Shown: one piece after another, positions 460-57,140 of the stretch
Position numbering within the stretch: the first letter of the stretch is position 1
Layout of the letters: every line of letters begins with the position of its first letter
Notes under the pieces: generated by a model
Seen by the model: only the letters and a program-made list of their open reading frames with translations
The model's database searches: none
What the model was told of the DNA's origin: nothing
Translations under genes and position numbers: made by a program
Source of the DNA: Bigelowiella natans CCMP2755
Lineage: Eukaryota > Protista > Cercozoa
Direction of reading: 5' to 3'
Length of the DNA stretch: 64,000 nucleotides
NCBI GenBank assembly: GCA_000320545.1
Contig: ADNK01000140.1
Coordinates: forward strand, 252,003-316,002

Positions 460-900
460 GCATAGTGAATTCACCAGCTGCAGTTTTCATGAATCTGACT
501 GCTGCATGTGATGTGCATGCATATATTATTCTAGCATTGTGCATTGAATGACAAGTTGATGGGCGATACACACATGGAAGCTTACATGTACATCCCCACT
601 CTTACACTGCGATCTACACTAGTACACACTAGCACAAGGCATCATAAATCTAAAGTCTAGGTTTGTCTATGGCACACTTACACATAAGTTGCTGCTGAAG
701 TCAGCATGTAGGCGTGCATGCACAAGCTAGCAAGGTATGATGCGCGGGCGCACGCATTGCTTGCTAGACCTATTCTGTGCCTGGCGTTACCTAGCATATA
801 TAGTATCATCCTTACATGTCTAGAGATATATAGATTGATACGGATATCTTTAGACCTAGACACTATGATTCATTCAACCATACATAGCATACGTATTTAA
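460..900. other. CTAG/TGCA/CATG-rich 3'-end spacer S1 (convergent lipase / GT25)
   Basis: Non-coding and dense in tgcatg, gctagc and tctag; lies between two stop codons. Confidence 0.7.
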
Positions 901-979
901 ACATGAACATAAACGTTTGCAAGTGACTATCTCGTTTGATTCACATTATATTATGAGATGCCATAGGTTGACCACGTAA

Positions 980-2165
980 TTAACACTCTGGGATGTCGAG
1001 ATCGGACTTCCCATGAATGGATTTGGCCCCAGTTACTTCATCGTTTGGATTCTGGTCGAAGATTCTAGGTACTGTAGAGAAATATTTGAAACTGCCATCA
1101 TTCACAAGGTCCACTCTAATTTTATCCTCCGATTGATGAATTGGGACATTCGCTTCCAACTCAATTTCAGCTGCACGCCTGGTGTACATGTATGCATGTG
1201 TGCAATATGGTTGAGGAGCTTGGATGAGCTTGATGCCTCCAGGAAGCATCGCCATGGTATCACCACAATAAGGGCTGCAAATTCCAAGATTAATTCCATC
1301 CCATTTTGGCTCCTTGCTCGAAGATTTTGCCAAATCATGGATGTATTGGAGGATGTTTATCTTCCCTGATTGTAATTATTTATTTATATTATAAGAGAGA
1401 GGATGTACAGAATATGACAAAGAGTCCACCTTGATCTTTCCCCTGTGCCTTTGCTATTCTTTCTCGGATACCCTCTTGAAGAATGATGTCGTCTTCAAAC
1501 ACGACGGCATGGGTTAGTGTTTTGTCCTTTAGAAACATTTTTAGCGCTTTTTGGTGAGAAAGGGCGCAAGCGATGATTCCTTTGCGACGGAAATCCCACA
1601 GCTTCTTCGAGAAACCTCTTTGGAGCTGAGGATGAAGTTATAAATGACTTTGTTCGTACACATATACTATCTCTATACCTGTCCAGATTTGACGAGGTTT
1701 GCCTCGTTAAAGGAGTTTCTGTCAATGGCATCCACAACTCTAGTCGAGTTCTGTAATCCAATTTGTTCCAAGATGGAGGTGGCATATTCTTTCCTGTCTT
1801 CCATAGCGATTACGTAGAATCCCAAACTTCCATGATTCTGCGACACCCTGAAGGTAAGCTAGTTTATTTTTGATGCAAGAAGATAAAAATACAAGGATTC
1901 ACTTACACACTCATTCCCGCCTGGCTTCTCATAAATGTCCCTACAATCGGGGAAATGGGCTCTTTGAATTGTATCTAAAGACAATATAATCACAAACCAT
2001 ACTGATATTCGACCAACTAAAATCATACTTCAACGAGGAACCACAAGATAACAGAAATGGAATGAAATGGTATACTATGTTATTCATGGAGGAGTTCAAG
2101 GGCTGATGTGGATCACGCCACACCGCCAAGCAGCATGAAACAAACAGTGCCAGAATCCAGAGCAT
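980..2165 (-). CDS. Glycosyltransferase family 25 protein with N-terminal signal peptide/anchor (multi-exon)
   Basis: Spliced reading gives MLWILALFVSCCLA..., FYVIAMEDRKEY...TRVVDAID, GIIACALSHQKAL...HAVVFEDDIIL and WDGINLG...YCTHAYMYTRRAA...PRIFDQ, which are the GT25 motifs in the expected order. Confidence 0.8.
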
Positions 2166-2896
2166 TGTGATTGTGATTTCTAGGAAGTACCAAGTGCGAA
2201 GTTTCCAAAGAACATGTTTTTAGTGGAAACGGGTTGATGCACAATGAGAGACGGGCATTCGAGGCATTCGAGGCATTCAAGCAAACGTATTTTGAAAACC
2301 CCCTACGTTTATTCTCCTCGACAAAAATCTATGAGTACCTACCTATTTGCTTGTAATTCCATGTGTAAGAATTCATGGATGTCTTCACGATGAAATAGCC
2401 TTTGCTTTTCAATTTTGAAATTTCTCTCGTATGCTCGTATCCATTACACACCGAGGTTTTTTGGGTATTTTGTACCGGTACATAAAACAATACCTTTATT
2501 GGAAAAAAAGGGCATTCTTATGGTACGTCATCCGTTCTTTTTTGTCTTTCGTCATGATATTAAGCTTTGTTGTAAGTTTGCCTTTGCTTGACTCCCGCCT
2601 TTTCTGGAGAGATGAGACAACAGCAACACCTCAGATTTCTACTCTGCGTCAAGACATATACCTTGGCGCACACCCCACTTTATTGGTGTTCGCTGCCGCA
2701 CTTCCTTCTTCTCGCAAGCAATCAGAAACCAGAAGCCTCTTCCAGAGGTAGCCCTTCATAACGGTGGAAGGAAGGAAGGAAGGAGAGCTGTTCGGAGCTT
2801 CTGCGTTTTCAACACATATATTAATCTCTTTTCTTCTGTACCATGACTTGCAGGAGACCAAATTCGTGCACCACTAGGAATCATTCTTTGGAAAAT

Positions 2897-5249: not shown

Positions 5250-5960
5250 TAGAAAACTTAGCCAAAATTTTGCGCAACGTATATCTCTAGATCTAGAAGA
5301 CGATATGAAACGGATATGTAATATGACAGCAATTGCATTTTTTCAATGGTCATCCCAATGTCTAGACATGTAGCTATCTAGCTATGCAATATTTCCGGCG
5401 GCTACAGCGAGATGTATGAGACCTAGAGACGGATGTGATGAAAAAGATTACATTTTGTCAATGGTCATCCTTGTAGTCTAGTTGTGTGGCTATCTAGCTG
5501 TGCAAAGCAGCGACTACAGCTATATAGACAGCGCTAATACCTTGCCATTTTGGCATCATCTACTGCTAGTCTAGATCATGTATGCTGTATGCTAACACTC
5601 GCGCATGCACAATGTCTACTAGTAGTCTACTAGAATGTACAATGCTTGTCAATCTGGACGACCTAGCTTGTGCATAGCTAGCTAGCTAGCTAGACTTGCA
5701 ACGCTTATGTACATTGATGTCAAGACATATTATACTAGTATATCTAGGTATGTCAGCCAAGCGATGATGCAGATTAGCTTATTTGACTTCGTTTATTCTT
5801 TTGTCGACGCATATTCGATCGAACATACTCTGCGATAGCCATGCGCATCGTCGCTGATTTGCGAACCCTTATAGCTTGCTGCTACGCTGCGACACGTTAT
5901 TTCAGTTAGCAGCATAGCCACTCGTTCAACTAACCCTCCATGCACATATGCGACCGCACT
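5250..5960. other. CTAG/TGCA/CATG-rich 3'-end spacer S2
   Basis: Contains tagctagctagctag and many tctag/tgca sites; lies between the USP14 stop and a convergent minus-strand gene. Confidence 0.75.
5304..5520 (+). repeat. Two diverged tandem copies of a ~100 bp repeat also found inverted in spacer S8
   Basis: acggat..t(a/g)at...catttt.tcaatggtcatcc...tctag...gctatctagct.tgcaa...gcg.ctacagc occurs at 5304-5409 and 5426-5520. Confidence 0.75.
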
Positions 5961-6099
5961 TTCTCTCATAAGTATTAGGAAGCTGTTTCAGTAGAAAGAC
6001 ACGCACACACAATCATATTGGTCGCTGTACTGTAGCAAGCACGAATTTGCCGTCTACACCTTGAGCTGCCACGATTATCATGTTTTTGTGCATGGCTAC

Positions 6100-6460: not shown

Positions 6461-6491
<31 letters not shown>

Positions 6492-10769: not shown

Positions 10770-11520
10770 ATCCATCGATCATATTATCTAGATCATATCT
10801 ACATGGTAGCTCTATCCCAACTGCGTGCACATCGTTGCGCTTGCTTGCGCCGGCTAATCATCTTTCCTGAGCGCAACCGAGAAGTGGGTTGGATGATCGC
10901 AAGCGTGATGTTTCATGGCATAATATAATAATAATGTGTTATGTTACGTAGTTAGCAAAATGTGCGATGTACAGACGTATTGTAGCTTCAGCCTTGTGCC
11001 TCTACTAGTCTAGCCTAGTAGCCTCTGTGTGTTTGGCGCGCATGTGCATCGCAAAGTCTTTGGTAAGTGGGAAGTCAAGCACTATAGCACGCAGCGACGC
11101 ATGCAGCTGCATGTACACAACGCTTCACAATAGTGTTCCTTGCACATTATTGTATTATTGGAGCAAGCCTTATATATAGCCTTTGCTAGTGTGGGCTGGC
11201 CGAATTGTACTGCTAGGATGCGTGGCGCTGTGCATGCAGTGCCCATATGAGGGCCGTTATTATTTAGCCTCATGCGTAACAGCAAGCTGTGGCTTTATTG
11301 TTGTGTTATGCGTGAAAAAAATGCTGTTTGTACGTTACATCTCAGCGAGCAGCTCATCAGCGAGCTACAGTCTATTGATGAAAATGCTGATCTTATCACA
11401 TGGCATCGTAGCGCTGCTGGACGCGCTGGACCGGAGTATTCCACAATTAAGAACAAACGCTACAAAAATCTAGCGTTTCTGGGCATCGGATGAAGTCTGC
11501 GCTATAGTGCAAGCATGCAT
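10770..11520. other. CTAG/TGCA/CATG-rich 3'-end spacer S3
   Basis: ctactagtctagcctagtag and gcatgcagctgcatgtac; lies between convergent genes. Confidence 0.65.
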
Positions 11521-14843: not shown

Positions 14844-15143
14844 ACCTCCCTCTCCTATCCTTCTCACAGCCTATCTCTGTTTGTGATTGAATGAACAAAG
14901 AACATACTGCATGTGCACTATGAGCTTCATGTATTCGAAATTTGAGTTGAATAGGCTACTACCATGTATGTGTTGGATACGCCAATGCAAATACGCGCAA
15001 TGTTCACTCGCTCTATATTTACCTCATCACGTACTAAGATTCTGAATGCTGATCAAACAAAACAATGAAAGATATACAAAACATCGAATTATTGACAGAA
15101 CTTTAAGGTTGAGCTGACCTCTCATGTCTTCCAAATAGGCACC

Positions 15144-16228
15144 ATGAATAAGGAACTCGTCGGAAAGATCTCGCTTGGATCCACTGTTGGCCTTAGCGCC
15201 GTCCTCTGCGGAATGCTTGTCTTTGGCAACAACGGACACGTTGGAGCACCTGTCTCCCGTGGAGTTTCCCGTCCTGCTATGACTCGCATTGCTCGCAACA
15301 CATTGGTCAATGCAGCAAGGAAGGTGATTCGAACAACCTTCCCGAAATTCTTTTTCTAGGAAATAATCATGTTTCATAACATTTAATGAACGCGCTACAA
15401 TAGGCACCTCCTCCACCAAAGAATAACGAGGATCCTCTTTGGCTTCCTAACACCGAACGCCCTGGCTGGCTTGATGGATCCCTCCCTGGAGACCGTGGAT
15501 TCGATCCTCTTGGACTATCAAAGCCTGCTGAATACTTGCAGTTCGACGTTGATCAGCTTGATCAAAACGCTGCTGTGAACAGGGCAGGAAGGGTCATTGG
15601 TCAGTACGACGGAGGAATCGATGAAGTAAACACCGAAAACTCCCTTTCTCCTTATTCTGACATTTTCGGTCTTCGCCGATTCCGTGAGTGCGAACTCATC
15701 CACGGACGTTGGGCTATGCTTGCCACTCTCGGTGCTATCGTTGCTGAGCTTTCCACTGGAGTTCCATGGTAATAGAAAGGAAAAAATATTGATGGATATG
15801 TAAAGTTGGATAACATAAATTTATACTGTAACGGGATGGGAATCATTAGAATAGTTTACGTATGGGTGCTAATTAATTTTCATTTTTAATTTTACAGGGA
15901 CCAAGCTGGAAAGGTTGAGCTTGATGGAGCTCGCTACCTGAACTTTGACCTTCCTTTTACCGTCTCCCAGCTTACCCTTTTGGAGGTTCTCCTCGTCGGT
16001 GGTGCTGAGATCTACCGTAACACCGAGACTGACCTCGACAAGAGACTGTACCCTGGCGGAACATTCGATCCCCTTGGATTTACTACCAAATCCGATGAAC
16101 AGACTATGCGCCTCCGCGAAGCTGAGATCAAGCACGGCCGATTGGCTATGGTAGCAGCATTCGGATGCGGTGTTCAGGCATTCACCACTGGTGAGGGTCT
16201 TATTGAGAACCTTTCCTTCCTTAACTAG
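15144..16228 (+). CDS. LHCB4: Light-harvesting chlorophyll a/b protein CP29 with bipartite targeting leader; exons 15144-15323, 15404-15768, 15898-16228
   Basis: [34 protein letters not shown] (CP29-specific long N-terminal loop), [28 protein letters not shown] and [22 protein letters not shown]; strong high-expression codon bias. Confidence 0.95.
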
Positions 16229-16439: not shown

Positions 16440-17730
16440 GCTGCCGTTTGCAAGCTGCATCGCACGTTCAAATGCGGTTGGTCATGCAACATCAGAGCAC
16501 GTCTAGATGTGCAGACAACTACAAAATATGCGATGTAAGCAATTCACATCCACTACATGTATCGTCATCTTTTTGGTCATGTGAATGGAGGAAAAACATG
16601 CAAGCATATGCTGCGCGCACGCGCCTCGCTTTTCAATGGATGCAATAGACATACGCATGTGTCATACATGTCATGTGCACTGTAGACATGCGCATGCATT
16701 GTACACATTGTGTGCATCTTATGTGTACTGTGTCCATAGTGGATTCATTGTCTGGGCATGTGACATGTGCAGTCATTGCGTCATTGCTAGCTAGATTGCA
16801 TGAGGGCTTGCTAGCTTGCATGCACATGCACGCAAACTGATGCGATTGCACAGCTAGCTGTTGGCTAACAGACGACAGAAGGACAATGATCGCATCGCCA
16901 CATCGCATGCCAGCACACATGCGAACGTTCGTAGCTCTAGAGCTAGCGATCAATTCGAAGTCGGCACAATTGCACATCATCATTGGCTTCGCTAGCTTCG
17001 TGCCATCAGCATTCCAGCACAATTGCGCAATGTCACAGTCACCTTTGTCTTTGTTTTCCAGTCATCCTCCTCGCAGTGCTGCAGACTTGTCTTCATTTTG
17101 GATTTGCTGTGAAGCACGAGGTGGTTTCTAGGAAAGTGCAAGCGAGCAAGCAAACACAAGGAAGCATCGCACTGCTTGCGTGTGTGTGCAATGCAAGGCA
17201 GGAAGAAAAGAAAGAATCAAGAAGCGAACAATGAAAAATGAACAACAATGAAAAATGAAACAATGAACAATGAACAATGAACAATGAACAAAGCGTTGAT
17301 CAAATCTACATGCGCCAGAACCACTTGGGAGACAGGCGTTTGCATGCAGCAGAGCCTCAACAACACTCGTTGCAAGGACTTGTCAGCACCCTGTTGGTGA
17401 TCAATGGCTCTAATTGCAACTGGATCGTGGAAACACGTTGCAATTGCTACAACTGGGCCTGCAAATTGTGTAGCCGTCAATTGGTCCGTTGGAGTGGAGT
17501 CAATCAGCAAGAACAGCTGCCTCGAACTTGATTCTCAAAGGTGCTGTTTCATGTGCCCCAAAGCGCACATTGTTGCAATGCATCGATTTTTTCATGTCAG
17601 ATGTTGCTTCTCCTTCCGACTTTGCAAACGGTGAAGGTCAGTTTTTCCACCGGGATGCCATGGGCAAGAGGAGATGTGCAACAATGAAACAATGATGAAC
17701 AATGAACAATGAACAATGATGATGAACTAC
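16440..17730. other. CTAG/TGCA/CATG-rich 3'-end spacer S4 (longest), containing (AATGAAC)n arrays
   Basis: catacgcatgtgtcatacatgtcatgtgcac and gctagctagattgcatg; follows the CP29 stop. Confidence 0.75.
17227..17290 (+). repeat. (AATGAAC)n heptamer tandem array; second array at 17680-17726
   Basis: aatgaacaatgaacaatgaacaatgaac is seen directly at both sites. Confidence 0.85.
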
Positions 17731-19999: not shown

Positions 20000-20620
20000 C
20001 GTCTGCGTTTGGTGCATGTAGCTAGTGTTTCGGCTATGTACATGAAACATGATGAACATTCCACAGAAAGAGACAAGATACATGCATGTCAACGTGTGAA
20101 CAGTCACCCACAGATATATGCATGGCGCAGTGCGTAGCATATATGAGACAGATGTTATGAATGAGTTAAATGTGTTCAACTTTCATCCTAATGTAGCTGC
20201 AAAGCTAGAAAGCCACAGCGCTTAAATGGCATATGGATTTTTACATAGTCAAGCAATATAATTGTAATTGCACACGAACAACAGCACAATGAAACACTAG
20301 ATGTAGTGGCCGGGGGTTACATGAAGCAAATAATGCTTCTTATTTTTTACTTGAGCTATTATTCATCCTCGCTCATGCATGTGCAGAGCATTGCGCTACT
20401 ACATTAGGCCATGCTAGCATGCGTGCCACTGCAAGAAAGCAGCTTCCACCAACAAGCCACAATTTATTTTACTTTTGTTACTCAGGAGGATAACTATTCT
20501 TCGTACTTTCTATGTATGCATGCTACTACCAAAGCGGGTGAAAAAAATCATTTAGATCTTAATGCATAGCTCTAACTACAGACGGATAATCGATGACTGA
20601 CGATGCAAGGTAAACATGCA
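20000..20620. other. CTAG/TGCA/CATG-rich 3'-end spacer S5
   Basis: tgcatgtagctagtg and catgctagcatgcg; lies between convergent stops at 19988 and 20638. Confidence 0.65.
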
Positions 20621-20637
20621 TGAGAGGCCTATTGTTA

Positions 20638-21461
20638 CTACTTATTTTGGGAGGAAGATACAAATTCATGTATCAGTGGATTGACCAGCTGGGGAGCCTC
20701 GTCCATCGGACAATGCCCGACGCCAGGAAGCGTTATAAACTTTTCGATGTTCTTTAGACCCCCAAACGTGCGACGGCCCATCTGTTGAATATATCATGTT
20801 ATGAGCTGTATTTTGCCATAACAACGAGTGTAACCAAAATGCTAAAATAGGGAAGACTAGAAATCATGCCCATAGGAACGTGCTAAAAGAATATATCCCT
20901 GAATAGATCTAGCTGGATCATACTGAATACAACCAGCTGCAACTCGAAGAAGCAAAATTTCAATGTTACTATGATTATCGCTCAGCCATACGACCTCAAG
21001 AGGCTCCCAGGGGTCTTCCTCTCCCCAAACGATTTGAACTGGGCATTTGAGCTGTGGTATGAGCTCCTCTGGAAGCGGCCCTCCCGAATACGAAATAAAG
21101 TCAAGAAAGACGTCAACTGCTCCTGGCAGCAGGCCCTACATGTTTTTATTCGTTTTGATAAGTTATCAAGTGGAGAAGGAGGAGTAGGAGGAAGGGGAGA
21201 CGTAATGCCGTGGTTGGATGAATGCGTAATTATCGTAGCAAGGCAGATAGAAGAAAGAGTATGAGGCCCCTCACCATGCTTATTGTTCAACAACAATAGG
21301 AGCTATTATGCACTACCGGATTGAGGATAAAGTTTACAAGCTCGTCTGTAACTTGGGCTTTATCATGGTAGGCCTGCTCCAATACGCTGCGTACACCCTT
21401 AGGAGTTGCAACTTGACCGAAAAACCATCGTCCCTTTCAGGATTGCCATTCGTAAGAGATG

Positions 21462-21502
<41 letters not shown>

Positions 21503-21721
21503 CATATAATATGTTAATATGTATATGTTTTTATACGGACAGAAGACGCGATAAGTATGGCAGTATCCTTCCATAAAAGTCACGATCGCGTACACAGTTT
21601 ACTTTTCTCTGTTGTCGTGGGGGATGTATTATTATACACACCACCAGCACGATCACCACCACCAAGCCTATCTACTGCTACTTCCATCACTACTGATACT
21701 TACAGCGACTAAATACTACTA

Positions 21722-21754
<33 letters not shown>

Positions 21755-23054
21755 ATACTAATACTACTACTACTGCTGCTACCAGCTGTGTTTCCCTGAG
21801 TGTTGTCTGCAGCAAAGAAGTGAGTGGGCGTTGCAAGAACGGTTGCTTCGACCAATGAAGGAGCCTTAAGCTGGGATCGAGCAGCATCACTCCAGCGGTA
21901 GAATCAGGTTCTAGTACAGCGGCCTAATGTAAGGAATAGGAGAAAATGAGAGAAATAGTGAGAGAGAGAGAGAGAGAAGAGAGAGAGAGGGAGGGAGAGA
22001 GAGAGAGCACATGCGAGTAGAGTAACAACATTTATTGATGGTCGGAGTCAGAGGGATCTTCTATAATGCACAAAACCTGAAGGCCTGCGACGCTGCCAAC
22101 ACTGTTACAAATGTAGTAGACCTAATCAATAGTACATTAACGGTAGTAGTTGTAGTAGCTATGTATGAGCTGAGTAAAGGTAATCAGAGAGAGAAGTAAT
22201 ATTACCTTCCGCCCTTCGCCTACTCCAGCAACCTCCTTGGAAAAGGCGCGTAGTTGCTCGCCCCACGTCTCGAATGTATAGCTAAGCAAAGATTGAAAAA
22301 TATCTTGCGGTGATTGATTGCAATGACATTGATCTTTGAGAGGGAGAGGGAGAGAGAGGAGTACGGATTTCAGTGTGAGGTTAGCGAATATAAATTAGTT
22401 TCGAATAGCGTTATACATTTGCTCAGGGCTGGGGTACGCAGCTGGAGGTGTTGGCTTGGCAGAAAAACCGTATCCAAGCAAATCTATCGCGTATGTATCA
22501 GCGTATTTGCTGACCTGAATTACATCATTATCATTATTAACATCATTTGATCATTTCAGTGGCGACGGTGTTCGTAATGATTCAGATTCTTTGAATTGAA
22601 TTTTTGCAATATTTAAAAGAATGAGGATATTGACCTCTGGAATGTTTTTCCTCCAATGGTCTGCATTTCCACCAAATCCATGCACGAGAATCACAACTGG
22701 ATCGTCCTTAGAGACCAGGGAGCTGGGTGCTTTCGCTTCCTGGTACCGAATGGAGTGCCCTCGCCAATCCCAGAACTTCCCCTCCATTCCTGGCTGTTGT
22801 AGGGTTTGGGTCGGCTCCAAGAGATCTTTCGAGGATCCCGTTTCGGCCTTTGCACGCCGTACCAAGGATGATGATGATGATGAACCAGTGTTATGGCGAA
22901 GAAGCGTACGCTCCCTTGCCCGCTTGAGAAACCTGGTATTACCACCACGGCGGATCTGTAGTAGTCGAGATGAAGTGGACGCACCGTTTACTTCGCCTAG
23001 AAGGACAGCAAATACCAACGCTGTCGCAGCAGTAGGCATGACATCTCTCATCAT
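20638..23054 (-). CDS. Plastid-targeted alpha/beta-fold hydrolase (pheophytinase-like family)
   Basis: Signal peptide plus Arg-rich transit peptide; WDWRGHSIRY, ILVHGFGGNADHWRKNI, YAIDLLGYGFSAKP, YTFETWGEQL, nucleophile elbow CNSVG, FLDFISYSGGPLPEEL, WGEEDPWEP and GVGHCPMDEAP. Confidence 0.9.
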
Positions 23055-23330
23055 TGATTAGGGGGAGGAGCACAGCGGAAGTGTATTGTTTGTGGTGCAG
23101 GAGACGTCGACAGCTGTCGGGCAAGCTGGTACATTTATGTCGCACATTGAAAATGGCCTATGTTACTCGATAATATCCTTGTTGCGAATAGATGGTATAA
23201 AATAAAGGGGTTTTTGCAGCTGCGACATGCTTGTATTGCTTGTCGCAATGAGGAGCATGTCTCAGAGACAGAACCAAAAACAAGGACCGCCGGAGGAGGA
23301 GGAACCTATCCCCGCCCCGTCTGCTTCAGC

Positions 23331-24135
23331 ATGAACGTGATAAGGGAAATTCAGCGCATCAACGAACGGGAGTTGGAAGAAGGAATACAAGAGGAGGGCT
23401 CATGGCACCAAAAGTATAGAGATTCTGCATACGTGTTCGTTGGCGGCTTGGATTACGATCTCACGGAGGGGGATGTGATCACAATCATGTCCCAGTACGG
23501 GGAAGTCGTCGATTGCAACTTGGTGAGAGACAAAGAAAAGGGAACATCGCGTGGATTTGCTTTTATTGCGTATGAGGATCAGCGCAGCACTATTCTTGCT
23601 GTGGACAACATGAATGGCGCAAAGCTGTTTGACCGGACTCTTCGGTGTGATCACGTCCTCGAATACCGCAGGCCAAAGAAGAAGAAGAAGGAAGGAGAAA
23701 ATTTAGACGAGAAGGATCAGGGTGGCGATGAATCCGATGAGACGTACGAGGAACGACGAAAAAGAATATGGGACTATGAAAAGTACAACGCACAGGCTGT
23801 TACGGCTCGTCCTGTGCAGGCTTCAAAAGCTAGAGAGGAAAGCCAGCAAGAACAAAATCGGAAGAGTAAGATCATGGCAATTCTAGAGAGTAAAAAACGA
23901 ATGTGGAAGGCTAGGCGGATGGCTCAAGCAGCTGAAGAGGAATGTGGGGGGGGCAAGAAAATTTGGGGAGGGGAAGACATGCGGCGTCAAAGAGAGCAAG
24001 GACGTAGTAAACGGGAAGAAGGCAGAATGGACAGAGGTAGAGGAAGAGATCGGAATAGAGATAGAGACGAAATTAGAGGAGGAGGAGATCGCCGCGACAG
24101 GTCGAATAAGAAACATAAGAAAAAAAAAGAGAAGA

Positions 24136-24167
<32 letters not shown>

Positions 24168-24239
24168 CACAGTCGAGGCGACTCTCGGGACCGCTTAGAA
24201 TCGAGACGTAAAAGACGAAGACGATCTGACAGCAGATGA
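23331..24239 (+). CDS. RBMX2: RES-complex RRM protein RBMX2/Snu17(Ist3), intronless
   Basis: MNVIREIQRINEREL...SWHQKYRDSAYVFVGGLDYDLTEGDVITIMSQYGEVVDCNLVRDKEKGTSRGFAFIAYEDQRSTILAVDNMNG..RCDHV, with an RD/K-rich tail. First ATG of the conserved N-terminus is at 23331. Confidence 0.93.
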
Positions 24240-24309: not shown

Positions 24310-25160
24310 ACAAATCTAGAAACATATGTGTGCGCATTCGCTCAATATGGCATTGTATGTCACCCTGCTGTCCCTGCTAGTTTAGCTACGCACTCGTATG
24401 GCATGTTTGATGAGTGCAACCGAGGTTGAGTGTGCCCACACATACATATGTGAATTGTTAGATTCACTGCTGGGTGGCATGTGTTAAAAGGTATGTTGCT
24501 TGCTATGCGGCGTGGACACATATCATGTGGAGCGCTCAAACTAGATCATGCATGCATGCTAACATTGCCCAAACACATATAGCCCCATCGCATGTTATAG
24601 TAGCAATAGTCATCATTATGCGTACGTTCGTTGCTGCCACAGCTAGCACAGCACGAGCGACTTGCTAGCTTGCTGGTTTCACCAGTCGATCAGCTTGATC
24701 AGATTTCGCAGTCATGCGATATTATAGCTAGCTAGATCGGCTCGGCATCATCAGATTTCGTCGCCGCAATTAGATTACGGCGGCACAATCCGATTGTGCA
24801 AGAACACACAACGCTGGCGTGATCAGATTGCAGATTGCGGCGGACAACATTAAATTGGACGTAATCTGATTACCCAACGATGATTGCCGCCATGCGCTCG
24901 TTGCGTCTGACATGCAATGGCGGCACGCAAACACTCCGAGCCTGCCATGAGCCAACACAATGCACTAAATGCAGCGCAGTAGTCTAAGCCTCTCAGACTC
25001 ATTTGTGCGCAGAAGGCCCCAATGTGTGCAACAATATATTTGCCTAAGTACACATAAGATATTATGACTAGCTAGGTGGCATGCACTGATGGCGACTGCG
25101 TGGCTCTGCTTTCGATTCAAGCTGTCATGGGCTGTTTTCACAGACTTATGTAACAGCATG
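24310..25160. other. CTAG/TGCA/CATG-rich 3'-end spacer S6
   Basis: ctagatcatgcatgcatgct and tagctagctagatc; lies between convergent stops at 24239 and 25164. Confidence 0.75.
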
Positions 25161-25163: not shown

Positions 25164-27754
25164 TTAGGGCATTAGAAGTTTCTGCAAAGCCGTGTCTTCA
25201 ACTAGGTCACTGAGAAGATCCTCGAGTTGGCTGGAAGCTCTTTGCGGGGGTTGTTGCTGTTGTGCACCGGTCGCTTGTGCACGCATGTCGGGCGCTCGTC
25301 CTGGGAAATGGTCATTGACGCGTTGGGTTGGAGGAAATCTGTTATGTCCAGTAGAGTGTGTACGCATGTTTGCTGGCCGTTGAAGAAATTTGTTATGGCG
25401 ATTGTGGGGTGGTTTTGGTGGGGGGGCATACCGCATAGGTGGTTGTTGTCCATGTATATGTGGCGGTCGTCCACCATGAAAGTTGTGATGTGTACGCTGC
25501 GAGCCAGGAAACCTCCCACGAATCGGGGGTCGTTTTGGGGCCATGCTCGATGGAGTATTCGGTATGCGTCTGCTACCACGGAAATTTTGAGATGCGAGTT
25601 GCGAAGATGAGGGAGCAAACGGGGAATGCTGTTGTTGGGCTACACCTGGCGTGTTCGGTGGCCGCCGCCTCCTCACATTGTTGTTATTATTATGAGCAGC
25701 ATTTTCAGGAAGGACGCTGCGCCCACTACCAAACCCATCAACTTTGGTATTTTCACCACCTACAATTTTGATCAGAATTTTTGACCGCTTTCTCTTCCTT
25801 CTTCCCCCCGCATCAATTTTCTGCGAGGATGAAAATCGATTACTGGGTGGTGGTGTTGCTGCTGTGATAGCTGTTTCAGAATGAAGGTTGGCAGTACTAG
25901 AGGAGGTTGCAGTGCCAGCAGTACTTAAGGTAGTAGTATCAGTAATACTAGCGTTGGTACCACCAATTCCACCTGCTGCTGATGAACTTAGGGGGTTAGT
26001 AGGATCAACCTTGCGTTGAAATAAAGGAGGAGGAGGAAGAGGAGGAGGGCCTGATGAATATCGCTTTGTGAATAACCCGTCGTCGCTTTCGTTATGGTTG
26101 GTAGCACTAGCACCTCTAACCCTCGAGGTAGCATCAGCACTGCTGCGTGCATATCGACTCGTGAGGTCGTCATCGCTACCATTGTCTTTGGCAGCAGCAG
26201 AGGTAACAGCTACTTCTGTATCACTACGACGCGCATATCGACTCGATAAGGCGTCATCATCGCTACCGTCGTCGTTGGCAGCCTTGGCATCAGTACCTCT
26301 TTTAGTACCAGAACTGCGGCGTGCATATCGGCTTGTTAGGTCGTCATCATCGCTACCATCGTCTTTGGAGGCAGCAGCTGCAGCACCAGCTCTAGAAGTA
26401 GCATCAACACTGCGGCGTGTATATCGGCTTGTTAGATCATCATCACTATCAGTTTTGTTGGAAGTAGTAGCAGTGGCAGTAGCACCACTGCGGCCTGCAT
26501 ATCGATCCATAAGGGCACCATCGCTACCGTCGTTGTCATCATCATCATCACCACCATCGTCGTCTTTAGCAGCACTTTCTCCCACGCTGGCACTGCTGCC
26601 ATTGGCAGCATACCGACTCGCGAGGGCGTCATCGCTGTCATCGTCGATTGTGCTAGCTTTTGCACCAGGATTACCTGTACTGCGGCTTGTATATCGGCTC
26701 GTGAAGACGTCATCGCTACTATCATCATTGGCAGCATTAGCATCAGGACCTTTTCTTTTAGTAGCAGCACCACTGCGTGCATATCGACTCGTGAGGTCGT
26801 CATCGCTACCATTGTCTTTGGCAGCAGCAGAGGTAACAGCTACTTCTGTATCACTACGACGCGCATATCGACTCGATAAGGCGTCATCATCGCTACCGTC
26901 GTCGTTGGCAGCCTTGGCATCAGTACCTCTTTTAGCACCAGAACTGCTGCGTGCATATCGGCTTGTTAGGTCGTCATCATCGCTACCATCGTCTTTGGAG
27001 GCAGCAGCTGCAGCACCAGCTCTAGAAGTAGCATCAACACTGCGGCGTGTATATCGGCTTGTTAGATCATCATCGCCTCCATTGTCGTTGGCAGCACCAG
27101 CTTCTGTACCACGACTAGCATTAGCACTGTGGCCTGAATATCGACTTGTGAGATCGTCATCGGTATCATTGTTGTTTGCGGCCGGTGCTCCTCCTCTAGT
27201 AGCATCAACTCTATTGTTGCGAGGACGCTTAAAGCTGCCATCCTCATCGTTTGCAGTTTTGCGGTCAGAATAGCGACGACTAATGACGGCGTCGTCGTCG
27301 ATATCGCCACTGTTTGCATTGACAGCATGATCATCAACAGCAGCTCCTACCACATTGGCAGCAGCCCCAGTACTACTACTACTACCACCGGTACCACGAC
27401 GACTTGGGAGAAGATATCGGTTAAACAACTCATCATCGTCACTGCCGTCGCCGACGATATCCCCCCCCATAGTTCCTCCTTTCTTCCATCTCCTCGACTG
27501 ATTAGCTTGGTTGTCTTCGTAGTTGCTTCTTCCGTTGGTCATAGTCGTTTTCTGGGCGAGATTCCTTCCTCCTCCTCCTCCTCCTCCTCCTCCTCCTCCT
27601 CCTCCTCTAACGAGGTCCCACTGAGCATCAGAGTGGGGTCTGCTGCTGCGGTTGGTGGTGCTACCCCTTTGATGGGATTGGTTGAGACCAGGCAAGTTAT
27701 TATTTTGCTGGTGGTTTTGATGGCGGTAGGAGGAAGGAGGATGGGGAGGGTAGC

Positions 27755-27790
<36 letters not shown>

Positions 27791-28343
27791 ATTGATGACG
27801 ATGATTATCTTGCCGCAGGTGACGATCCTGACGGCGGTATTGTTCATTATTCCATTGGTCTTGGCCCTGCTTGTGATAATTCTGACGTTGTTGATGATGC
27901 TGATATCGACGGTCTTGCTGCTGCTGGATTTCATGTGAAAATGGGCACGAGTCCCCGTACTTACAGATCCCATTTCTGAAGAAAACACACCTCACCGTCT
28001 GCTTGATGCTTGGTTCCACCGACAATGACGATGGCGCTGGCAACGACGACGACGAGGAGGAGGGGATGGGTATATCGCTGCTTCGCCTACGGATAAGCTC
28101 CCGCAGCTTTCTTCTCTTCATCCTCTTCTTCATCTTCTTACGTCTTTTTCTAGTGTCCCTATCTGCCTCCCAATCTGCCAGCCCCTTCTGCCAAGCAGCA
28201 GCAGAAGTAGAAGCCTCCTCAACTCCTTCCTTAGTCTTCATCACTAGCATATTGTCCTCTTGCATCATGATTTTCCGTCTCTATACAAATAAATATCAAT
28301 ATAAATAATTATATATAATTATATATAATTATATAATTATATA

Positions 28344-34549: not shown

Positions 34550-34860
34550 CATCATAGCATGCAATACGAATTTACTTTCTGCAAGCATAGTCACATGTAT
34601 CATGTGAATGCGTACCACGCGCAGCAATATCGCTGTGGCGCTATACTTACGCAATGTACATGTGACCGATTTTTGAACTAAAATAATAAATAGTGATGAG
34701 ACAGCGGTCGCTGATTTATTACGGATGAGGCCCTAGTGTACCTAGCTTCGTAGCGTATAATTACATCAGCTTGTCACTGACTATTGCTTTATTCGGACAG
34801 CATGCCCCTGCGTTGTCGTATGCATTGTAGCAGTAAAAGCCTAGGCACTAAAATTGCGCT

Positions 34861-34894
<34 letters not shown>

Positions 34895-35227
34895 TGTTGT
34901 AGAAACGAATATATAACAAGCGCAAGACTAAGCGCCGCAGCCGCTGCTCTATCTGTACGTGTAGCTACATTAGGATGTGACTAAAGAAAAAATGTAATCA
35001 TTTCATTACATCCGTCTTATAGCTACATATTTGCTGTGTATTTGCATATATGCATGTGCATAATGAGCTTGATGACCTCAATTTAAATGTGTTAGTCGTA
35101 AATATGTCTAAATATATACATATATACATATGTGTACATACATACATAAGCGCTATAAGCCGCAGCGTTGCATGGCTACATTAGGATGACAATTGAAAAA
35201 TTTAACATATGCATTACATCTGTCTCA

Positions 35228-35271
<44 letters not shown>

Positions 35272-35323
35272 ATTGAAAAGAGATAATCACTTCATCACAT
35301 TCGTCTCATATATGCATGAATAC

Positions 35324-35361
<38 letters not shown>

Positions 35362-35450
35362 TATATACAAGACGATAGCTTAGCTGACCACTTCTGCATA
35401 TCATGGTTAGAAATGTGCATGCATAGCATGCAGAGTAGCGTGTGTAATTG
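34550..35450. other. CTAG/TGCA/CATG-rich 3'-end spacer S8 with three inverted copies of the S2 repeat and (TA)n/(CA)n tracts
   Basis: gctacattaggatg...aaaa...catt/cacatccgtct at 34961-35021 and 35171-35230, with a partial copy at 35271-35312. Confidence 0.7.
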
Positions 35451-50219: not shown

Positions 50220-51453
50220 AACGGATGATATCATGTAAAGACCCCGTCACGGTATGAAGAGAGAGAGAGCACCGTTATTCTGTTGTATTTGTTCTAATCT
50301 CCTCCCCCCCCCCCTTGTTAATATTGATCATTTATTGAAAACGAATGTAATTAACAACACCATGACAGGTTCAAAATTCTTCCAACTGTACGCGAGGGCA
50401 GCTGGGTATCATGACATAATTTATAAATTAAGAGAGAAAGGGTCACCGACCTCACTCTGTGAGCGATAATCATCATTTATTCATGTGCTCTATGTGTACA
50501 TATAGATGGTCCGAAAAATGGTAGGGGCGAAACCTGCTCTTCTAGGTAATATGCATTCTTCGTTCAATTTCGTAAGATTTACTGCTAGAAGTAGTAACAA
50601 TTTTCGTCATCACCATCATCATCATCATCATCATGACGACCATTGTTTGCATCATCATCCTCTATATCCTCTGACTAGGCAAGAAGATATCTTGCACTTA
50701 CAGCAAAGGTGGTCATACATATTTACCAGCAACAAGCAGAACGTTTGCCGTTGTCGTCGTCATAGTTGTTGGAGAAGAGGGAATACGAGTGAATCTTCAC
50801 TGATGACTGAACGTCTACAAAACCGCTCTCTGTTATTGTTTATCTCCCTCCCTGTTGCTGCCTTGTGCGTACTCTGTATCTTCACCAAATACCCATACCA
50901 ATTATTAAATGAATGATCGATCATCACAGGAGTGGACTACTTAGAGATCGACGTCGACATTGCCACGTCGTACGTCGCACAGAAGATATTAGGAGTCGTC
51001 CAAGGCTACGCCAAAAACCTTATCGTAATAATTGATTAAATCTATGGATAATGGTGTCTTACCATCTGCAATCGTTCAAAATCCTGCCTTTTTTTGAAAA
51101 ATATGTTTCGATAGCATGCTGATGCGCAGCAAATACGTGTTTAGCATTTGCCTCCTTTCTGCATGGCCATGTAGTAGACATTGACCTTTCTTGAAATGAA
51201 CCTGCAGGTGGACCTAGGATTCCTCATAGAAGGCAGGGAAGAGAAGGAATTGCCCGAGGTGAGAACTCTCAGTATGCTGAGGCTTTTCGATTCGGATCGG
51301 TGAGCGACTTTTTATGGTATTATCACTCAGGTAATGCTTGGCGCAGTGCGTTTCCATAACGTTGATCTGGGAACGATACCAAAGCTAGAAATGGAGCCTA
51401 CCGTGAGCTCTCCACGGATGGCTGATCGAAATTCTGATAGCAAGAGCCTTTGA
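42706..51453 (+). CDS. PH - DEP - coiled coil - two TM helices - low-complexity - EDR2_C (DUF1336) protein
   Basis: PH: MEGTLIRHSTIRQNKERYFRL...YWFTLKTNGREHRFGAQNPLARVTWIKAIE. DEP: GIRKKTHYFEYQNVKNSFKG..DRNRALDVGAELLTAGKLTRVDGGRQFKGEDELYVF. EDR2_C: CWSQPKADEFKVRGARYLVD, RNDRFKILP..GSWMVRKMVGAKPALLG, YLEIDVDIATS and VDLGFLIEGREEKELPEVMLGAVRF. Stop at 51453. Confidence 0.85.
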
Positions 51454-51539
51454 TGATGAGGAAGAGCTAGAGCTACATTTCAAGGATATAAAAACTTTAC
51501 TTACACAGCTAAAAATGAATCGAAAGGATATTACACATG

Positions 51540-51910
51540 GTTAGATGGGTCCAGTTCGACCTTGCTAGCTTGACTAGATGTGACTTGTGCTGCCGATGCG
51601 GACAAATGTATGATGCCTAGTTCATGCCTAACTAGCATGCTAGCATGGCTAGATGGTTACCACCTCAGAGCGTCTAATGCAATGTGCGCATCTCACATGC
51701 ACAGTCTAGTAGAGCACAGCATGCCTCGATCATCTAGTCATGCTAGAATGCAGCATGTGTGAAAAGTGCATCCATCACACCGCAGCACCATTGCTAGATT
51801 GTGTGCTTATTGCTAGCTTAATTGCCACAACGCCGAAGCTGCTCTAGCGCTGGCTGTGCCCACGCTAGCACGGTGCCGCCCGATCTAGGATCTCACATCA
51901 TGCAGCGAAA
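51540..51910. other. CTAG/TGCA/CATG-rich 3'-end spacer S9
   Basis: actagcatgctagcatggctag and tctagtcatgctagaatgcagcatg; lies between convergent stops at 51453 and 52042. Confidence 0.75.
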
Positions 51911-52041
51911 TGCGTTTTTGATGAGACAGATAAATGGGCAGACAGACAGATAGAACGAACATATTTTTTCTAACATACAAACTGTACATTCTAGCATTAT
52001 TAAAATAAAATTAGGACACAATGTCACATGTAAAGCTAGCT

Positions 52042-53753
52042 CTAGAGATCCAAATATTCGGATGACTTTCTTTTTCTTTCAGCACATCTCGAGTCTTTAG
52101 TTTCCCCCGTCTCAAAAGCATCTGAGGATGACATGTTCTCGATCTTCTGGTTACCTTCGGAATAATAGTGCTTGAACGATAATTCGCCTGCATCCATTGA
52201 GTGTGATGGCCTAGTTTTCATAGATTGTGACTGACTTATCTCATCCTCAATGTTTGTGTCAGATACATGCTCGCACTGTTCTGATTTCATCCTATTTTCG
52301 TATTCTTGAAGCTGAGCCCAGAAACCAGGATTAGGTTGTACAATTGGCCTAAGTTTCTTCAAAAAACTGTATGCAGCTTCTAAAGTCCAATTCTTGTGTT
52401 TCATCAGGAAAGCCAGAACTATAGTCGCAGAGCGAGAAACACCTTGGTAGCAATGCACTAAAATTCTGTTATTTTCACTGCGTACCTACCGGGGAATGTG
52501 TTCAAGCAAGATAGTTATTATAGTTTTATGTGTTGATTTTCGAGGAAATATGTTTTATCTATTGTACCTTCTCGATAAAAGTTATTGTCTCTGAGAAATA
52601 CTTGTCCAATCTTGTTGTGCTCATATCAGGAACATCAACATGGAGGTACTCAAATCTTATCGTAATATATCAAATTTTAGCATTCTTTTTTAAGAATAGA
52701 GAATTTAATCAAATTTGGACCTATTAGGATATAAGTTTCCAACTTCCGCAGAAAGGTTCAAAATATGGGTTATCTAGCAAGGTAAATTATAGCACTCAAA
52801 ATTCATTTCAAAAAGTTCATGGAGTAATTGTAATATTGTAATTACTCTTAAATCGTCCAGATGTTTAAGAAGCCTAGCATCAGCTTCACATCCGAGGTAA
52901 AGGAAGTCCTCGATGACAATAGTTGGATACCTAGGGGAAAACAGCTATTTAAGAAAGACCCTACAACATAAAATCAAAAGTTTACCAAGGTATCAGCTTG
53001 GATTCCTGAACAAATGGGAACCTTATAAATACCATCATGGCGAATGAGTCAGGTGATTAAAGCAAAATCTCATTCAAATTTAGTTCTCACCTTCTCATAA
53101 AGCCATCCACTCCATCCTGAAGGACACGGATTGATCGACAATTTGTCAGTATTGAAGCGAAAGCCCATGCCGGGTCATAGACTTCGCCACTACCTTTCTC
53201 ACTTACAACTACGACTTCCATCATGCGTCTACGTCGGAAAGCAAGCCGATCTTTCATTGGGAGTTTTGATTCAATCTCAGTCAAAATTTCTCTTGAAGAA
53301 TATACGGTATCGATATCATTCATTGCATATTTCTTGCCCGATACATCAATCGCAACAGAGCCTTTACGGTCACGAATAATACTTGAATCACGTTTCTCAA
53401 GCTGCCCAGCTTTTGATTGCAAACATTGCTGTACAACAGCGTCCAGTAGTTCTATGTTGATAGATCTTGGAAGATGTGCTTTAGAGAATGAAGATCCTAC
53501 CAAAGTCAAAGCTCCATTGTACTCATACTTAATCTAGATGAAAATGAATTATCTTTCTACCTTCTCGTACGTCCAGAATCATTAACGAACCAGCTGTTAA
53601 AATATTGAAGAGCTCGGCGCAGGTAATCCATTCAATAGCAGCCTCGGAAGGCTTCAATGATACCGATGAAGAAAGCAACCCAGATGTAGCTGAAGATTCT
53701 GCGCTTTCTTCAATAGATGAAATCGGTGCTAAACTCAGCTTGCATTTTTTCAT
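52042..53753 (-). CDS. Dual-specificity (MAP kinase) phosphatase with N-terminal rhodanese domain
   Basis: Rhodanese: WITCAELFNIL..LMILDVRE, FSKAHLPRSINI, IRVLQDGVDGF. DSP: YPTIVIEDFLYLG, VHCYQGVSRSATIVLAFLMK..VQPNPGFWAQL. Confidence 0.92.
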
Positions 53754-54222
53754 GCCTTATTGTATTAATTTTAGAAAGTAAATAACTAAAACAGATAGAA
53801 AAGGTGAATAATACAGAAAGAACAAACGCGTTGGAGTCCAGTATAGCCTTTCACTGGCGCTCTAGCCGTCGAACACAGAGCACACACAAGGTATCCACAT
53901 TCCCTACCTTATCACACAAACAATGTCACTTTGAAGACAACTAATGATACAATACTGTCTCTTCATAATACAGTGGTGGCGACGGAAAAGTAACGTGAAC
54001 TCCTCCATACAGCGCCTGAATATTTAAAATTATGAGCATGTGAGCTAATTATGGAATTATGAATGATGGCAGAAAAGAAATGTCATTGGAAATAGAAAAT
54101 TATTGCATCGTTAGTAAAGTCAAAGACATTGATGAAGCTAGCATCGTTCTACACACATGCAAGCTGAAGAGGCCGAGTCGGGAACCCAGTTGTCGGCAAC
54201 CATGAAGCATTGTGCGAAGGAC

Positions 54223-56440
54223 ATGAGCGAATTGGAATCTGGTCTTATCTTCGCCTTGCCTATCTATGTTTTTTAAGTGATAGCAAGAGGCATCCTGCCA
54301 GGAAAAACACTCAAATTACAAGACGTTATCATCCTTACGACAACAGTCTCTGCGAACAATCAATCATAAACCGGTGGTTGGCGAACTGTTGGGCGGTCGA
54401 ATGAAAGGATTTCGGTTTTTTGAGATTGTGCTGGTGGAGTAATTTTGAAAGGTAGATAGGGATTTTTATTGACGACAAGTGCGAACCTCCAAATATGATG
54501 TGATTTTAGCAGACTGACTTTGGTAGAGTTAAGACATTAAATAGAACCACTCGTGAACTGCCGACTTTTTTTTTTTGAAGTTTAAGTCAACAATGGAGCC
54601 TGATGGGGACAAGCTTCTCGAACAAGCTGTCTCGGAATTCTTGAAACGAGTTCGAACCCTTGAAGAAAACCTACCACTTTTGGAATCTGAGAAGACGTCA
54701 GACACCTCTGGTGAGAATCCAGAAAGTGGAAATTATGATAACGATGGTGATTCCGAAGAAGAGGAAGGAAATTCAGCCAAAATCGCTGACGGAAAAAGCA
54801 TAAAAAATGCAGGAGATCTTCTGAGAATTGTTCGGCAGGAAGTATGCTTAGAAGATGAGGAAAAACGCCAAGGTAATGATAGTATTGTTTGGTTTATCAC
54901 CAAAAGGTTGTTTACTTTGATATTTATCAGTTGAAAAACTGAAATTGCTAATCAAAACACCATTTCTCAAAAGTGCTCTATATCACATTCCTCGGTTACT
55001 TCCTGATGTAAAGCATACAATTTTTACTGATATGCTTTGGATAGTGAAACGAAGATAATTACTAGGCTATAGATCATATTGAAAAAATATGGAACACGGC
55101 CCTAAAGAGTTTGAAGTTCATGAAACACATAGCAGAGTATTTTAGGATGAATCCTGAAATCGTCGTGCTGCTTCTTAAGAGGTCACCACATTGCATTGTT
55201 ACAATAATATGAAATATGAATACCAACATAAACTACAATACTATCAGATTAAAGAACCCGAGAATAGGTATTTGGAAGAAAGAGATTTACGATAGCTTCT
55301 GACTACGAAATATGTTTCTTGGTGCAGCTTTATCTCATGGTCGAATACTAATGGAAGCTGTTAAGCACAAAACAGTGCTTTTTTTCATTCTTAACAGCTC
55401 ATTGGTACGTGCAACGTTCGAATATAATAATATAATGTGACAACATTTTATTTACTCACAAATTAATGCAGGTATGGAGAATTTTCGAAATAATCCAAAA
55501 TAAGGGAACAGTGTATACAACGCAACAACAGCTGTTTGAGATATTTAGGGTAATGTTAACAAGGGAATCTACTGGGAATAAGAAGGTGGTCGCCAGATTC
55601 TTGAAGAAAAAGTATACACAGGTTCAGTCGAAGATTTGATCGATTCAGTTTAAAGATTTGTTGAATGTCATATGATCATCTAGTTTTTCCATAAATTTAA
55701 CGAGCTCCTGAATAGTTCTTATGTTGTGAAGCGCCAGTCGTTCAAGGTTTGAAGACAATTTTCAAATCGTTATGATGTGAATATATTTTGTAACATACTT
55801 AGCTACTGTCTGAAATATTGCAAGAGACATTGAATTTCAAAGTTATGCTGGTAATAAGAAATAGAATTTACACTTCCATCCCCTCTCTCATAATTTATCT
55901 GGATCGATTGAATCCGCATGTGGCGTTGAGTTGACCGCAGTGCATAATCGCCAATATTTATATTAATAGTGATTCTTTATGCTACGTAGAAATACATAGG
56001 GATTCCTGGAAACCTCCAAATCTGCATTAATAGTATGCTCCAAAAAGATCCAAAAGCAAAAGGAATTCGATTCGAGGCATTTCATGGTTCCGTAACCTTT
56101 ATGATATATACGGTTCAGACTGAAAAATAGTTTTCCATCCGCATATAGTGTTCAAATTCTATGTTGCAAACCCCAATAAGGTGACTTTCGGAAATAATTT
56201 CTGTATTAATGTACATAGTCTAATTCCACTCCCGTCAGCCACCAAAAATTGTGGATCTTCTCTTAAAGAATCGGGATCCATTATTGGAGGCTCTAGATCA
56301 CATGGCAACAAATGGTAATTTTTATCTGAAAAATAATTTCTTCTTCTGAAGTTCTATGCATAATGTGGTCGTGTGCACCAGATGGGATTGACTATGGGAA
56401 AGAACTTCCATTGCTGAGACGAAAACTGATGAAATTATGA
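54223..56440 (+). CDS. MO25: Mo25/CAB39-family kinase scaffold (divergent, multi-exon; start uncertain)
   Basis: FNELLNSSYVVKRQSFKLLSEILQETLNFKVM and [47 protein letters not shown] are Mo25 C-terminal signatures. Stop TGA at 56438-56440. Confidence 0.85.
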
Positions 56441-56549
56441 GTACCAAACAATGGTACTGCGGCTAAATTTCGCATTCAGATCTAGAGATTACCTGGTGCC
56501 CTTTCATTGTTTGCCTTCGCATTGAAAGGCTGCTGTTTCTTTCTTTCCT

Positions 56550-57140
56550 AGTTTCTCCCATGCGCACATGCGCATGCAATGTGCCTCCTAGTTGTGCACA
56601 GCCTGCTATACTGCTAGCCTGTCTAGTGTCTTGCGACGGCGCAAAGCCTGTTACGTCTCTTTGATTCGTTTTTCTACATTTCACGCTTGCATTGCTAGAT
56701 TGCATGCAAGCGCTTGCTACACAGCGCACCTTGACAACCCTGCTAGCCTGCCTGCAGGTCTTCCCGTGCGAGACCTACCCATCAGCACTAGAGCATGCAC
56801 AGGCCCGTGCCGACACCATGCATCTAGACCATGGCAACATTGCACTTCCACAATGGTGCAGAGTACAAGAACTGTTTCAATCGTGCTCATGACATGTGTG
56901 TGGCTACACTTGCTGTCTAACTGTGCTGCAGCTCACCTCACAGTCTAGCAGTCTAGCAGTGCTTGTGGAACAATCACTGCAAGTGCTAGTGCTTTTGTTT
57001 TATTCGTACCTTCCTCATGACTTGCCGGAACTGTGTCGTTTCGTAGCATGGTCTAGATGCATGGTCGTCATGCAGCAAGCTGGGTAAGTACACTGTCCTA
57101 GCACATCTCTAGAACATGACATCTAGACATGCTTCATTGA
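56550..57140. other. CTAG/TGCA/CATG-rich 3'-end spacer S10
   Basis: catgcgcacatgcgcatgca, cagtctagcagtctagcag and catggtctagatgcatg; lies between the convergent Mo25 and MYND genes. Confidence 0.75.

Follow-up and report, generated by a model that had tools for sequence, protein, structure and literature searches.

Tetramer-rich blocks in the Bigelowiella natans window

The window analysed here is a 64-kb stretch of DNA (contig ADNK01000140.1, positions 252,003 to 316,002) that forms the final 64 kb of its contig in the Bigelowiella natans nuclear genome. Besides genes, it holds ten non-coding blocks dense in the palindromic tetramers CTAG, TGCA, CATG and AGCT, and these blocks are the subject of this report. 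A preliminary description had listed them by eye as mostly non-homologous spacers that mark gene 3' ends and avoid divergent promoters and introns, and had read them as termination-linked, insulating domains. Counting the four tetramers in sliding 400-bp windows with a threshold of 35/kb, blind to the earlier coordinates, we recovered high-density windows that merge into ten regions, identical to those listed by eye. The blocks carry 53 hits/kb (38–81 hits/kb per block) compared with 15/kb outside, and the texture is indeed missing from the seven divergent intervals (11–29/kb) and from a sample of 17 introns (15.8/kb; 15 introns with RNA-supported joints and two read from the sequence of a chlorophyll a/b-binding gene). 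In Markov-1 simulations that keep the dinucleotide content of the window, 11 high-density windows were obtained on average (maximum 26), against 69 observed. For comparison, we added the contig's first 200 kb (264 kb in total) and 30 Ras-family-gene loci from other contigs (~360 kb in total). The 264-kb sample contains 50 blocks, covering ~14% of the DNA.

Several features that are independent of how the blocks were selected set them apart. Observed/expected ratios (O/E) of dinucleotides are 1.5–1.7 for GpC, 1.54 for CpA/TpG and 0.54–0.61 for CC/GG; GCGC is 6-fold higher and homopurine words are 3–6-fold lower in the blocks than outside. Alternating purine-pyrimidine steps make up 0.58 of all steps in blocks versus 0.48 outside, and the autocorrelation of base identity shows periods 2 and 4 without period 3, whereas period 3 is seen outside. 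Cytosine deamination was considered as a cause of the CC/GG loss; because CpG is not lowered (0.81 in blocks, 0.80 outside), we prefer the excess of alternating steps as its explanation. Relative to the strand of the upstream gene, the composition is symmetric (G = C, CA = TG, no k-mer asymmetry above z = 3), which argues that the blocks are not RNA-level signals. They are also heterogeneous, with TpA O/E between 0.12 and 1.61 and between 0 and 41 CTAG per kb, and we saw no motif common to them beyond the CTAG insertion scars described below.

The claim that the blocks are non-homologous holds for most of their length. Similarity to any other sequence in the 360 kb is limited to 4% of block DNA, and whole-genome searches with two blocks returned matches confined to embedded elements; the blocks are therefore not a repeat family. 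The two stretches for which the claim fails lie in blocks 2 and 4. Block 2 (5250–5960; 59 hits/kb, 18 CTAG including 6 exact scars) holds two copies (50–95 nt) of a short dispersed repeat at ~5300–5400 and 5426–5520, of which only the latter matches elsewhere in the genome. This repeat has dozens of copies at 87% identity on other contigs, some of them in short arrays with 70–300 bp spacing. Block 4 consists of a TpA-poor spacer (16440–17225) followed by a high-copy repeat element of ~420 bp on the plus strand (17226–17683), which is flanked by a 7-bp tandem repeat. Copies of the element occur at 90–99% identity on many contigs (371–455 candidates at first look), often as a 135-bp core in tandem. 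A piece related to it also sits inside another block (C3597, at ~48.8 kb). Together with its element, block 4 (16440–17730) shows a TpA O/E of 0.32 and a CpA O/E of 1.80.

Among the remaining blocks, block 1 (460–900) has 61 hits/kb, three exact scars, a GpC O/E of 1.78 and a CC/GG O/E of 0.57; its flanking open reading frames (ORFs) score as plus on the left and minus on the right, a strand call that is weak evidence. Block 3 (10770–11520; 43 hits/kb) has two exact scars and a GpC O/E of 1.93, and block 5 (20000–20620; 58 hits/kb) likewise has two exact scars. Block 7 (31230–32095; 40 hits/kb, four exact scars) is TpA-poor, with a TpA O/E of 0.44. Block 8 (34550–35450) is the weakest of the ten, with 38 hits/kb, zero exact scars and a TpA O/E of 1.36; it contains both intact and partly edited (TA)n, including (TA)n palindromes at 35235–35358. 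A short weak patch of the same texture (14900–15010; 63 hits/kb over 111 bp, CpA O/E 1.65, zero scars) occupies a 300-bp tandem gap before the chlorophyll a/b-binding gene.

Relation to transcript 3' ends

RNA evidence was assembled for 6 kb of the window (51300–57299) from a stranded, 3'-biased read set and from transcript contigs of three other studies. Block 9 (51540–51910, six exact scars) lies exactly between two convergent poly(A) sites: transcript contigs of the plus-strand gene on its left stop at 51524–51550, and the facing minus-strand gene has a poly(A) site at 51964, marked by an oligo-T loose end on 12 reads. Over 51700–51899, all four runs show an RNA depth of ~0, and the gap between the two transcripts has 73 hits/kb versus 35–40 in the flanking 3' untranslated regions (UTRs). 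Block 10 (56550–57140, six exact scars) also lies between convergent genes and overlaps the last ~100 nt of the 3' UTR of the plus-strand gene, whose transcript contigs stop at 56652–56688. The 3'-tag reads of the minus-strand gene (coding sequence 57276–57995) fall mainly at 57100–57299, with one low-depth contig extending to 56868; tetramer density is 80 hits/kb over 56689–57150. Density rises in steps from 16/kb in introns through 32–46/kb in the last 200 nt of the 3' UTRs to 73–84/kb in the gap. The blocks are not the ordinary transcribed 3' UTRs that would have spoken against the preliminary description: most of blocks 9 and 10 is situated past the poly(A) sites, where RNA depth is ~0, and overlap with mature RNA is limited to the last ~100 nt of some 3' UTRs.

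Two further blocks can be placed by their genes. Block 6 (24310–25160; 48 hits/kb) lies between convergent single-exon ORFs, at 23160–24239 on the plus strand (359 aa) and 25164–28268 on the minus strand (1034 aa). Block 4 starts 200 nt past the stop codon (16226–16228) of the plus-strand chlorophyll a/b-binding (LHC) gene at 15145–16228, which matches Pfam Chloroa_b-bind and has two short GT..AG introns (~15324–15403 and 15769–15897). On other contigs, we used the Ras-family genes, scoring a block when a window of at least 40/kb occurred within ~1 kb downstream of the C-terminal domain end or within 1.5 kb upstream of the N-terminal end. A block was found downstream in 17 of 17 genes for which the C-terminal domain end was located, and upstream in 1 of 12 (Fisher p = 3.5e-7), and fixed, unselected windows at +300 to +1000 and at −1000 to −300 of these genes differ likewise in every measure. 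The link between blocks and 3' ends that had been read from the sequence is thus directly backed by RNA at blocks 9 and 10, by ORFs at block 6, by the LHC gene at block 4 and by the Ras-family genes elsewhere. These observations support, across the genome, a tie of the blocks to the 3' ends of transcripts and none to promoters or introns.

This result was reached without ab initio strand calls. Codon log-odds, strand-asymmetry expectation-maximization and six-frame ORF contrast were all judged unreliable, since ORFs antisense to the LHC gene were rated as coding and dozens of impossible strand switches were implied. Splice-site consensus was likewise set aside for orienting genes: the 15 RNA-supported introns give only GT..AG, which is too weak. 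Pfam searches with 30 flanking ORFs, whose pieces were searched one by one, gave the LHC gene as the single clear match, and exact-protein look-ups for gene calls returned no match.

The gene map of the window calls for some amendments. The interval 53753–54223, listed earlier as divergent, consists mostly of 5' UTR exons and introns of the minus-strand gene; the real promoter gap lies at ~54160–54440. Here the minus-strand gene (introns seen as CT..AC up to 54156) and the plus-strand gene (contigs starting at 54439–54594) leave a bidirectional promoter gap of ~250–300 bp. Head-to-head pairs appear to be the commonest arrangement on the earlier map, which is not based on gene models and counts seven divergent, seven convergent and three to four tandem junctions. 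At 20620–23054, codon scores suggest plus-strand ORFs up to 22196 and minus-strand ORFs from 22398 with no block between them, which would make this a convergent junction without a spacer, unless the region is one minus-strand gene as assumed earlier. A weak alpha/beta-hydrolase hint on the minus strand (22554–23057, E = 0.017) is insufficient to settle whether it is one gene.

Insertion scars, alternating runs and TpA editing

One part of the block texture is a stereotyped 8-bp insertion, namely a 4-bp target duplication around CTAG. An exact duplication of the 4-nt flanks is present at 170 of 570 block CTAGs (30%), where 0.5% is expected, and the excess is seen only at a duplication length of 4. 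In the 264 kb, 116 of 367 CTAGs in blocks are exact scars compared with 3 of 458 outside, an enrichment of ~240-fold per kb. A scan of duplication lengths 2–9 and insert lengths 0–8 returned the CTAG scar as the only stereotyped insert. The empty target is dyad-symmetric, with C at position 1 in 49% (G 5%) and G at position 4 in 50% (C 3%); the favourite target is CATG (14%). From the distribution of mismatches between the 4-nt flanks, about half of the block CTAGs are recognisable scars, diverged by ~5% on average. Genome-wide, the scar word for the CATG target occurs 3,828 times, against seven for the reversed control, which by scaling gives roughly 28,000 exact scars. At 56941–56960, two tandem scars share one 4-mer target, as would result from a second hit on the duplicated target, and a similar chained pair is seen in block 9 (~51632–51656).

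Judged by their form, in which two bases from each end accompany the target duplication, the scars are most likely what a cut-and-paste element leaves behind on excision, one with CT...AG ends that duplicates 4 bp of its target. We infer this from the scars themselves because the parent was not found; all candidate parent elements in the 360 kb proved to be made of scars. A simple 4-bp fill-in process lacks support, since the excess of tandem 4-mer duplications is equal inside and outside the blocks. According to published genome statistics, about a third of the genome is intron, which should tolerate 8-bp insertions; that scars are nearly absent outside the blocks therefore argues for targeting and not for selection alone. 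Their confinement implies that they are either directed to untranscribed DNA or kept out of transcribed DNA.

Most of the four-tetramer signal is supplied by CATG and TGCA, whose source is runs of alternating purines and pyrimidines. Alternating runs of at least 12 nt number 3.1/kb in blocks versus 0.9/kb outside, and nearly all of them are scrambled TA/CA/TG/CG units. Recurrences of 9-mers within 30 nt reach 14 times expectation in blocks for direct and 4.5 times for inverted copies; outside the blocks, inverted recurrences show no enrichment. Palindromes of at least 10 nt occur at 3/kb in blocks versus 1.1/kb outside and lie 2.5-fold above a third-order Markov expectation. Mutation-accumulation lines of B. 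natans provide a frame for these patterns: the point mutation rate is 4.97e-10 in intergenic DNA versus 1.82e-10 in introns, the indel rate 1.96e-10 in intergenic DNA versus 2.2e-11 in genes, the transition/transversion ratio is 7, and several de novo insertions are short alternating strings (bioRxiv 10.64898/2026.01.13.699255). Since transitions keep the purine-pyrimidine pattern and are this frequent, old dinucleotide microsatellites would decay to such runs, and we regard the runs as probable old dinucleotide microsatellites scrambled by transitions. Table S2 of the same preprint shows that many of the 21 de novo indels are insertions of 3–11 nt ending in ACA. Transcribed DNA within the 264 kb commonly carries polypurine/polypyrimidine (GA/CT) microsatellites, whereas blocks have almost none; with GA/CT repeats outside and alternating-type repeats inside, the repeat spectrum itself differs by compartment.

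A third contribution concerns TpA. For viral and foreign DNA integrated in B. natans, Mettrop et al. described a hypermutation of TpA to CpA/TpG and defined hypermutated domains by a TpA rho of at most 0.43 together with a CpA+TpG rho of at least 1.52 (bioRxiv 10.64898/2026.01.13.699255). In our blocks, TpA O/E has twice the spread of the background and is anticorrelated with CpA (r = −0.57). CpA rho averages 1.51; for TpA, rho falls to 0.46 or lower in 11 of 67 blocks, six of which lie at or below the published 0.43 cut-off. Among 115 transitions between repeat copies in blocks, 53 (46%) are TA<->CA/TG differences, counted irrespective of direction. The scar centres decay in the same manner: CTGG/CCAG is the commonest one-off form, with 26 cases versus 1–5 for each other. 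In the most TpA-poor blocks, the majority of surviving TA lies within CTAG, and this survival fits an under-use of the TAG/CTA context among the mutations in the preprint (~20 of 220 versus ~20% expected, an approximate hand tally). The hypermutation signature is present in part of the blocks, while its timing is deduced. The sister genus Amorphochlora has been reported as (AT)n-rich, with such repeats 'largely absent' in B. natans, a contrast that would fit editing of TA-rich repeats.

Interpretation and comparison with known systems

We consider it probable that the blocks form an untranscribed spacer compartment that records region-restricted mutation, and that they are not a coded terminator or insulation signal. 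Such a spacer would start at or just before a poly(A) site and extend as far as the opposing gene's poly(A) site; where genes stand in tandem, it would reach in the direction of the following promoter. Its texture would be the summed footprint of mutational processes confined to the compartment instead of a common signal: tens of thousands of identical 8-bp insertions would leave the CTAG scars, decayed repeats together with direct and inverted micro-duplications would yield most of the CATG, TGCA and GCGC, and TpA-to-CpA/TpG hypermutation would act to a differing degree in each block. The spacer itself probably serves as room for polymerase termination, with a drifting sequence and a length that may be kept for this purpose.

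Several points weigh against this interpretation. The scars account for about half of the CTAG and only ~10% of the four-tetramer signal, and a full-length parent element with matching ends, terminal inverted repeats and a target duplication was not found in the 360 kb. We infer, and do not observe, the origin of the alternating runs in microsatellite decay. Mean TpA is not depleted (O/E 0.82 in blocks versus 0.79 in the background), so that editing can be only a minor or patchy contributor. The directly sampled DNA is ~0.4% of the genome, apart from the one genome-wide pattern count. Finally, a spacer of 0.4–1.9 kb behind nearly every gene, with the texture appearing even in the 300-bp tandem gap, could mean that the blocks have a function.

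In the interpretation given in the preliminary description, the blocks are functional termination or insulation domains whose special chromatin or DNA modification would halt the polymerase and keep gene units apart, similar to base J. The blocks lie exactly where the polymerase must terminate and yield no stable RNA, they follow all 17 tested genes, and the texture extends into the tandem gap. The confined scars and TpA editing would fit a distinct chromatin state, and genes for C5 DNA methyltransferases are present in the genome. Such a domain, however, would sit poorly with blocks that are non-homologous, very heterogeneous and strand-symmetric and that share no motif beyond the scars. The Tet/JBP family (PF12851) was unmatched in six frames at E<=0.001, a weak negative given small exons and the lack of a positive control. 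We keep the tie to 3' ends, find the texture better accounted for by accumulated mutation, and consider a functional domain of this kind unlikely.

An origin from host enzymes without any mobile element appears more doubtful still. Torsion or collisions downstream of genes could provoke recurrent double-strand cuts with a 4-nt stagger, by a topoisomerase II-like or other nuclease, after which error-prone repair would leave the scars and micro-duplications. Topoisomerase II prefers alternating purine-pyrimidine DNA as its substrate, the scars show a duplication of exactly 4 nt at a target with dyad symmetry, and direct and inverted micro-duplications are locally enriched. The intergenic indel rate in mutation-accumulation lines, ~9 times the genic one, points the same way, but none of the 21 de novo indels in these lines is a CTAG scar (bioRxiv 10.64898/2026.01.13.699255), and fill-in of a 4-nt stagger would yield a plain 4-bp duplication without the constant CTAG filler. 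Marginally less credible again is plain neutral junk, with the same processes acting genome-wide and selection clearing the texture from genes, introns and promoters. Apart from the blocks, all DNA is either transcribed or promoter, and fragments of transposable elements accumulate in the blocks too. Outside the blocks, however, only three scars occur in 227 kb, of which about a third is intron, versus 116 in 37 kb of blocks, although an 8-bp insertion into an intron should be nearly harmless; and with polypurine microsatellites common outside and rare inside the blocks, the spectrum of repeats itself differs.

Within the reading as a spacer compartment that records mutation, the fact that CTAG scars and TpA editing, two unrelated footprints, are both restricted to it suggests that the compartment is physically distinct, which leaves some room for the chromatin idea of the preliminary description. 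A stronger version, which we put forward tentatively, is that the spacers are a marked chromatin compartment (about one-seventh of the nuclear genome) that draws both a transposase-like nuclease and TpA editing, with transcription excluding both elsewhere. If so, this alga would restrict both the activity of mobile DNA and its mutagenic genome defence to the zones of termination, the same state might insulate neighbouring gene units, and the targeting of TpA hypermutation would be directly testable with existing assay for transposase-accessible chromatin (ATAC), kethoxal-assisted single-stranded DNA sequencing (KAS-seq) and Hi-C data.

The compartment is useful in its own right. Comprising ~14% of the genome and sharply bounded, it offers a sequence-only landmark for 3' ends in a genome that is dense in introns and difficult to annotate. 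With scars almost absent from introns, the spacers point to strong targeting, or to exclusion from transcribed DNA, and they provide a link to the newly reported and enzymatically unexplained TpA hypermutation. They also supply thousands of natural test sites for whether chromatin state directs scars and editing.

Full-text searches of the literature found no description of these spacers or scars; closest in print are the TpA preprint and a yeast study on inverted repeats. Comparison is made with systems that share single features. Like base J at the convergent strand-switch regions of kinetoplastids, the blocks mark the end of transcription between convergent units; base J, however, is a modified base that JBP enzymes produce where long polycistrons end, whereas the blocks follow single genes or gene pairs and are known from sequence and RNA. 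In yeast, short inverted repeats enriched at poly(A) sites (Miura et al. 2018, PMC6420913) resemble them in that palindromes are concentrated at gene 3' ends. The yeast repeats are AT-rich, lie at the poly(A) signal within the transcript and are linked to nucleosome exclusion, while the blocks are of mixed composition, mostly lie beyond the poly(A) site and span 0.4–1.9 kb.

The TpA hypermutation of Mettrop et al. occurs in the same organism, and the likeness extends to blocks with TpA O/E down to 0.12 and CpA up to 1.8 and to TA<->CA/TG as the commonest difference between repeat copies. Their preprint treats viral insertions and 124 clusters of at least 3 kb and leaves gene 3' ends, CTAG and spacers unmentioned. 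Most blocks, moreover, show no TpA depletion, and neither the alternating skeleton nor the excess of CTAG can be a product of editing. For the scars, the closest parallel is found in the excision footprints of Tc1/mariner-type and other cut-and-paste elements, which, for Tc1/mariner, consist of the target duplication and a few terminal bases. Shared features are a target duplication of fixed length on either side of a brief invariant remnant, symmetry in the choice of target and re-insertion in tandem at a duplicated target. The scars differ from Tc1/mariner footprints in that the duplication is 4 bp and not TA, and in that the 360 kb yielded no parent element. They differ from cut-and-paste footprints in general by their number and distribution, with tens of thousands of scars confined ~240-fold to post-gene spacers.

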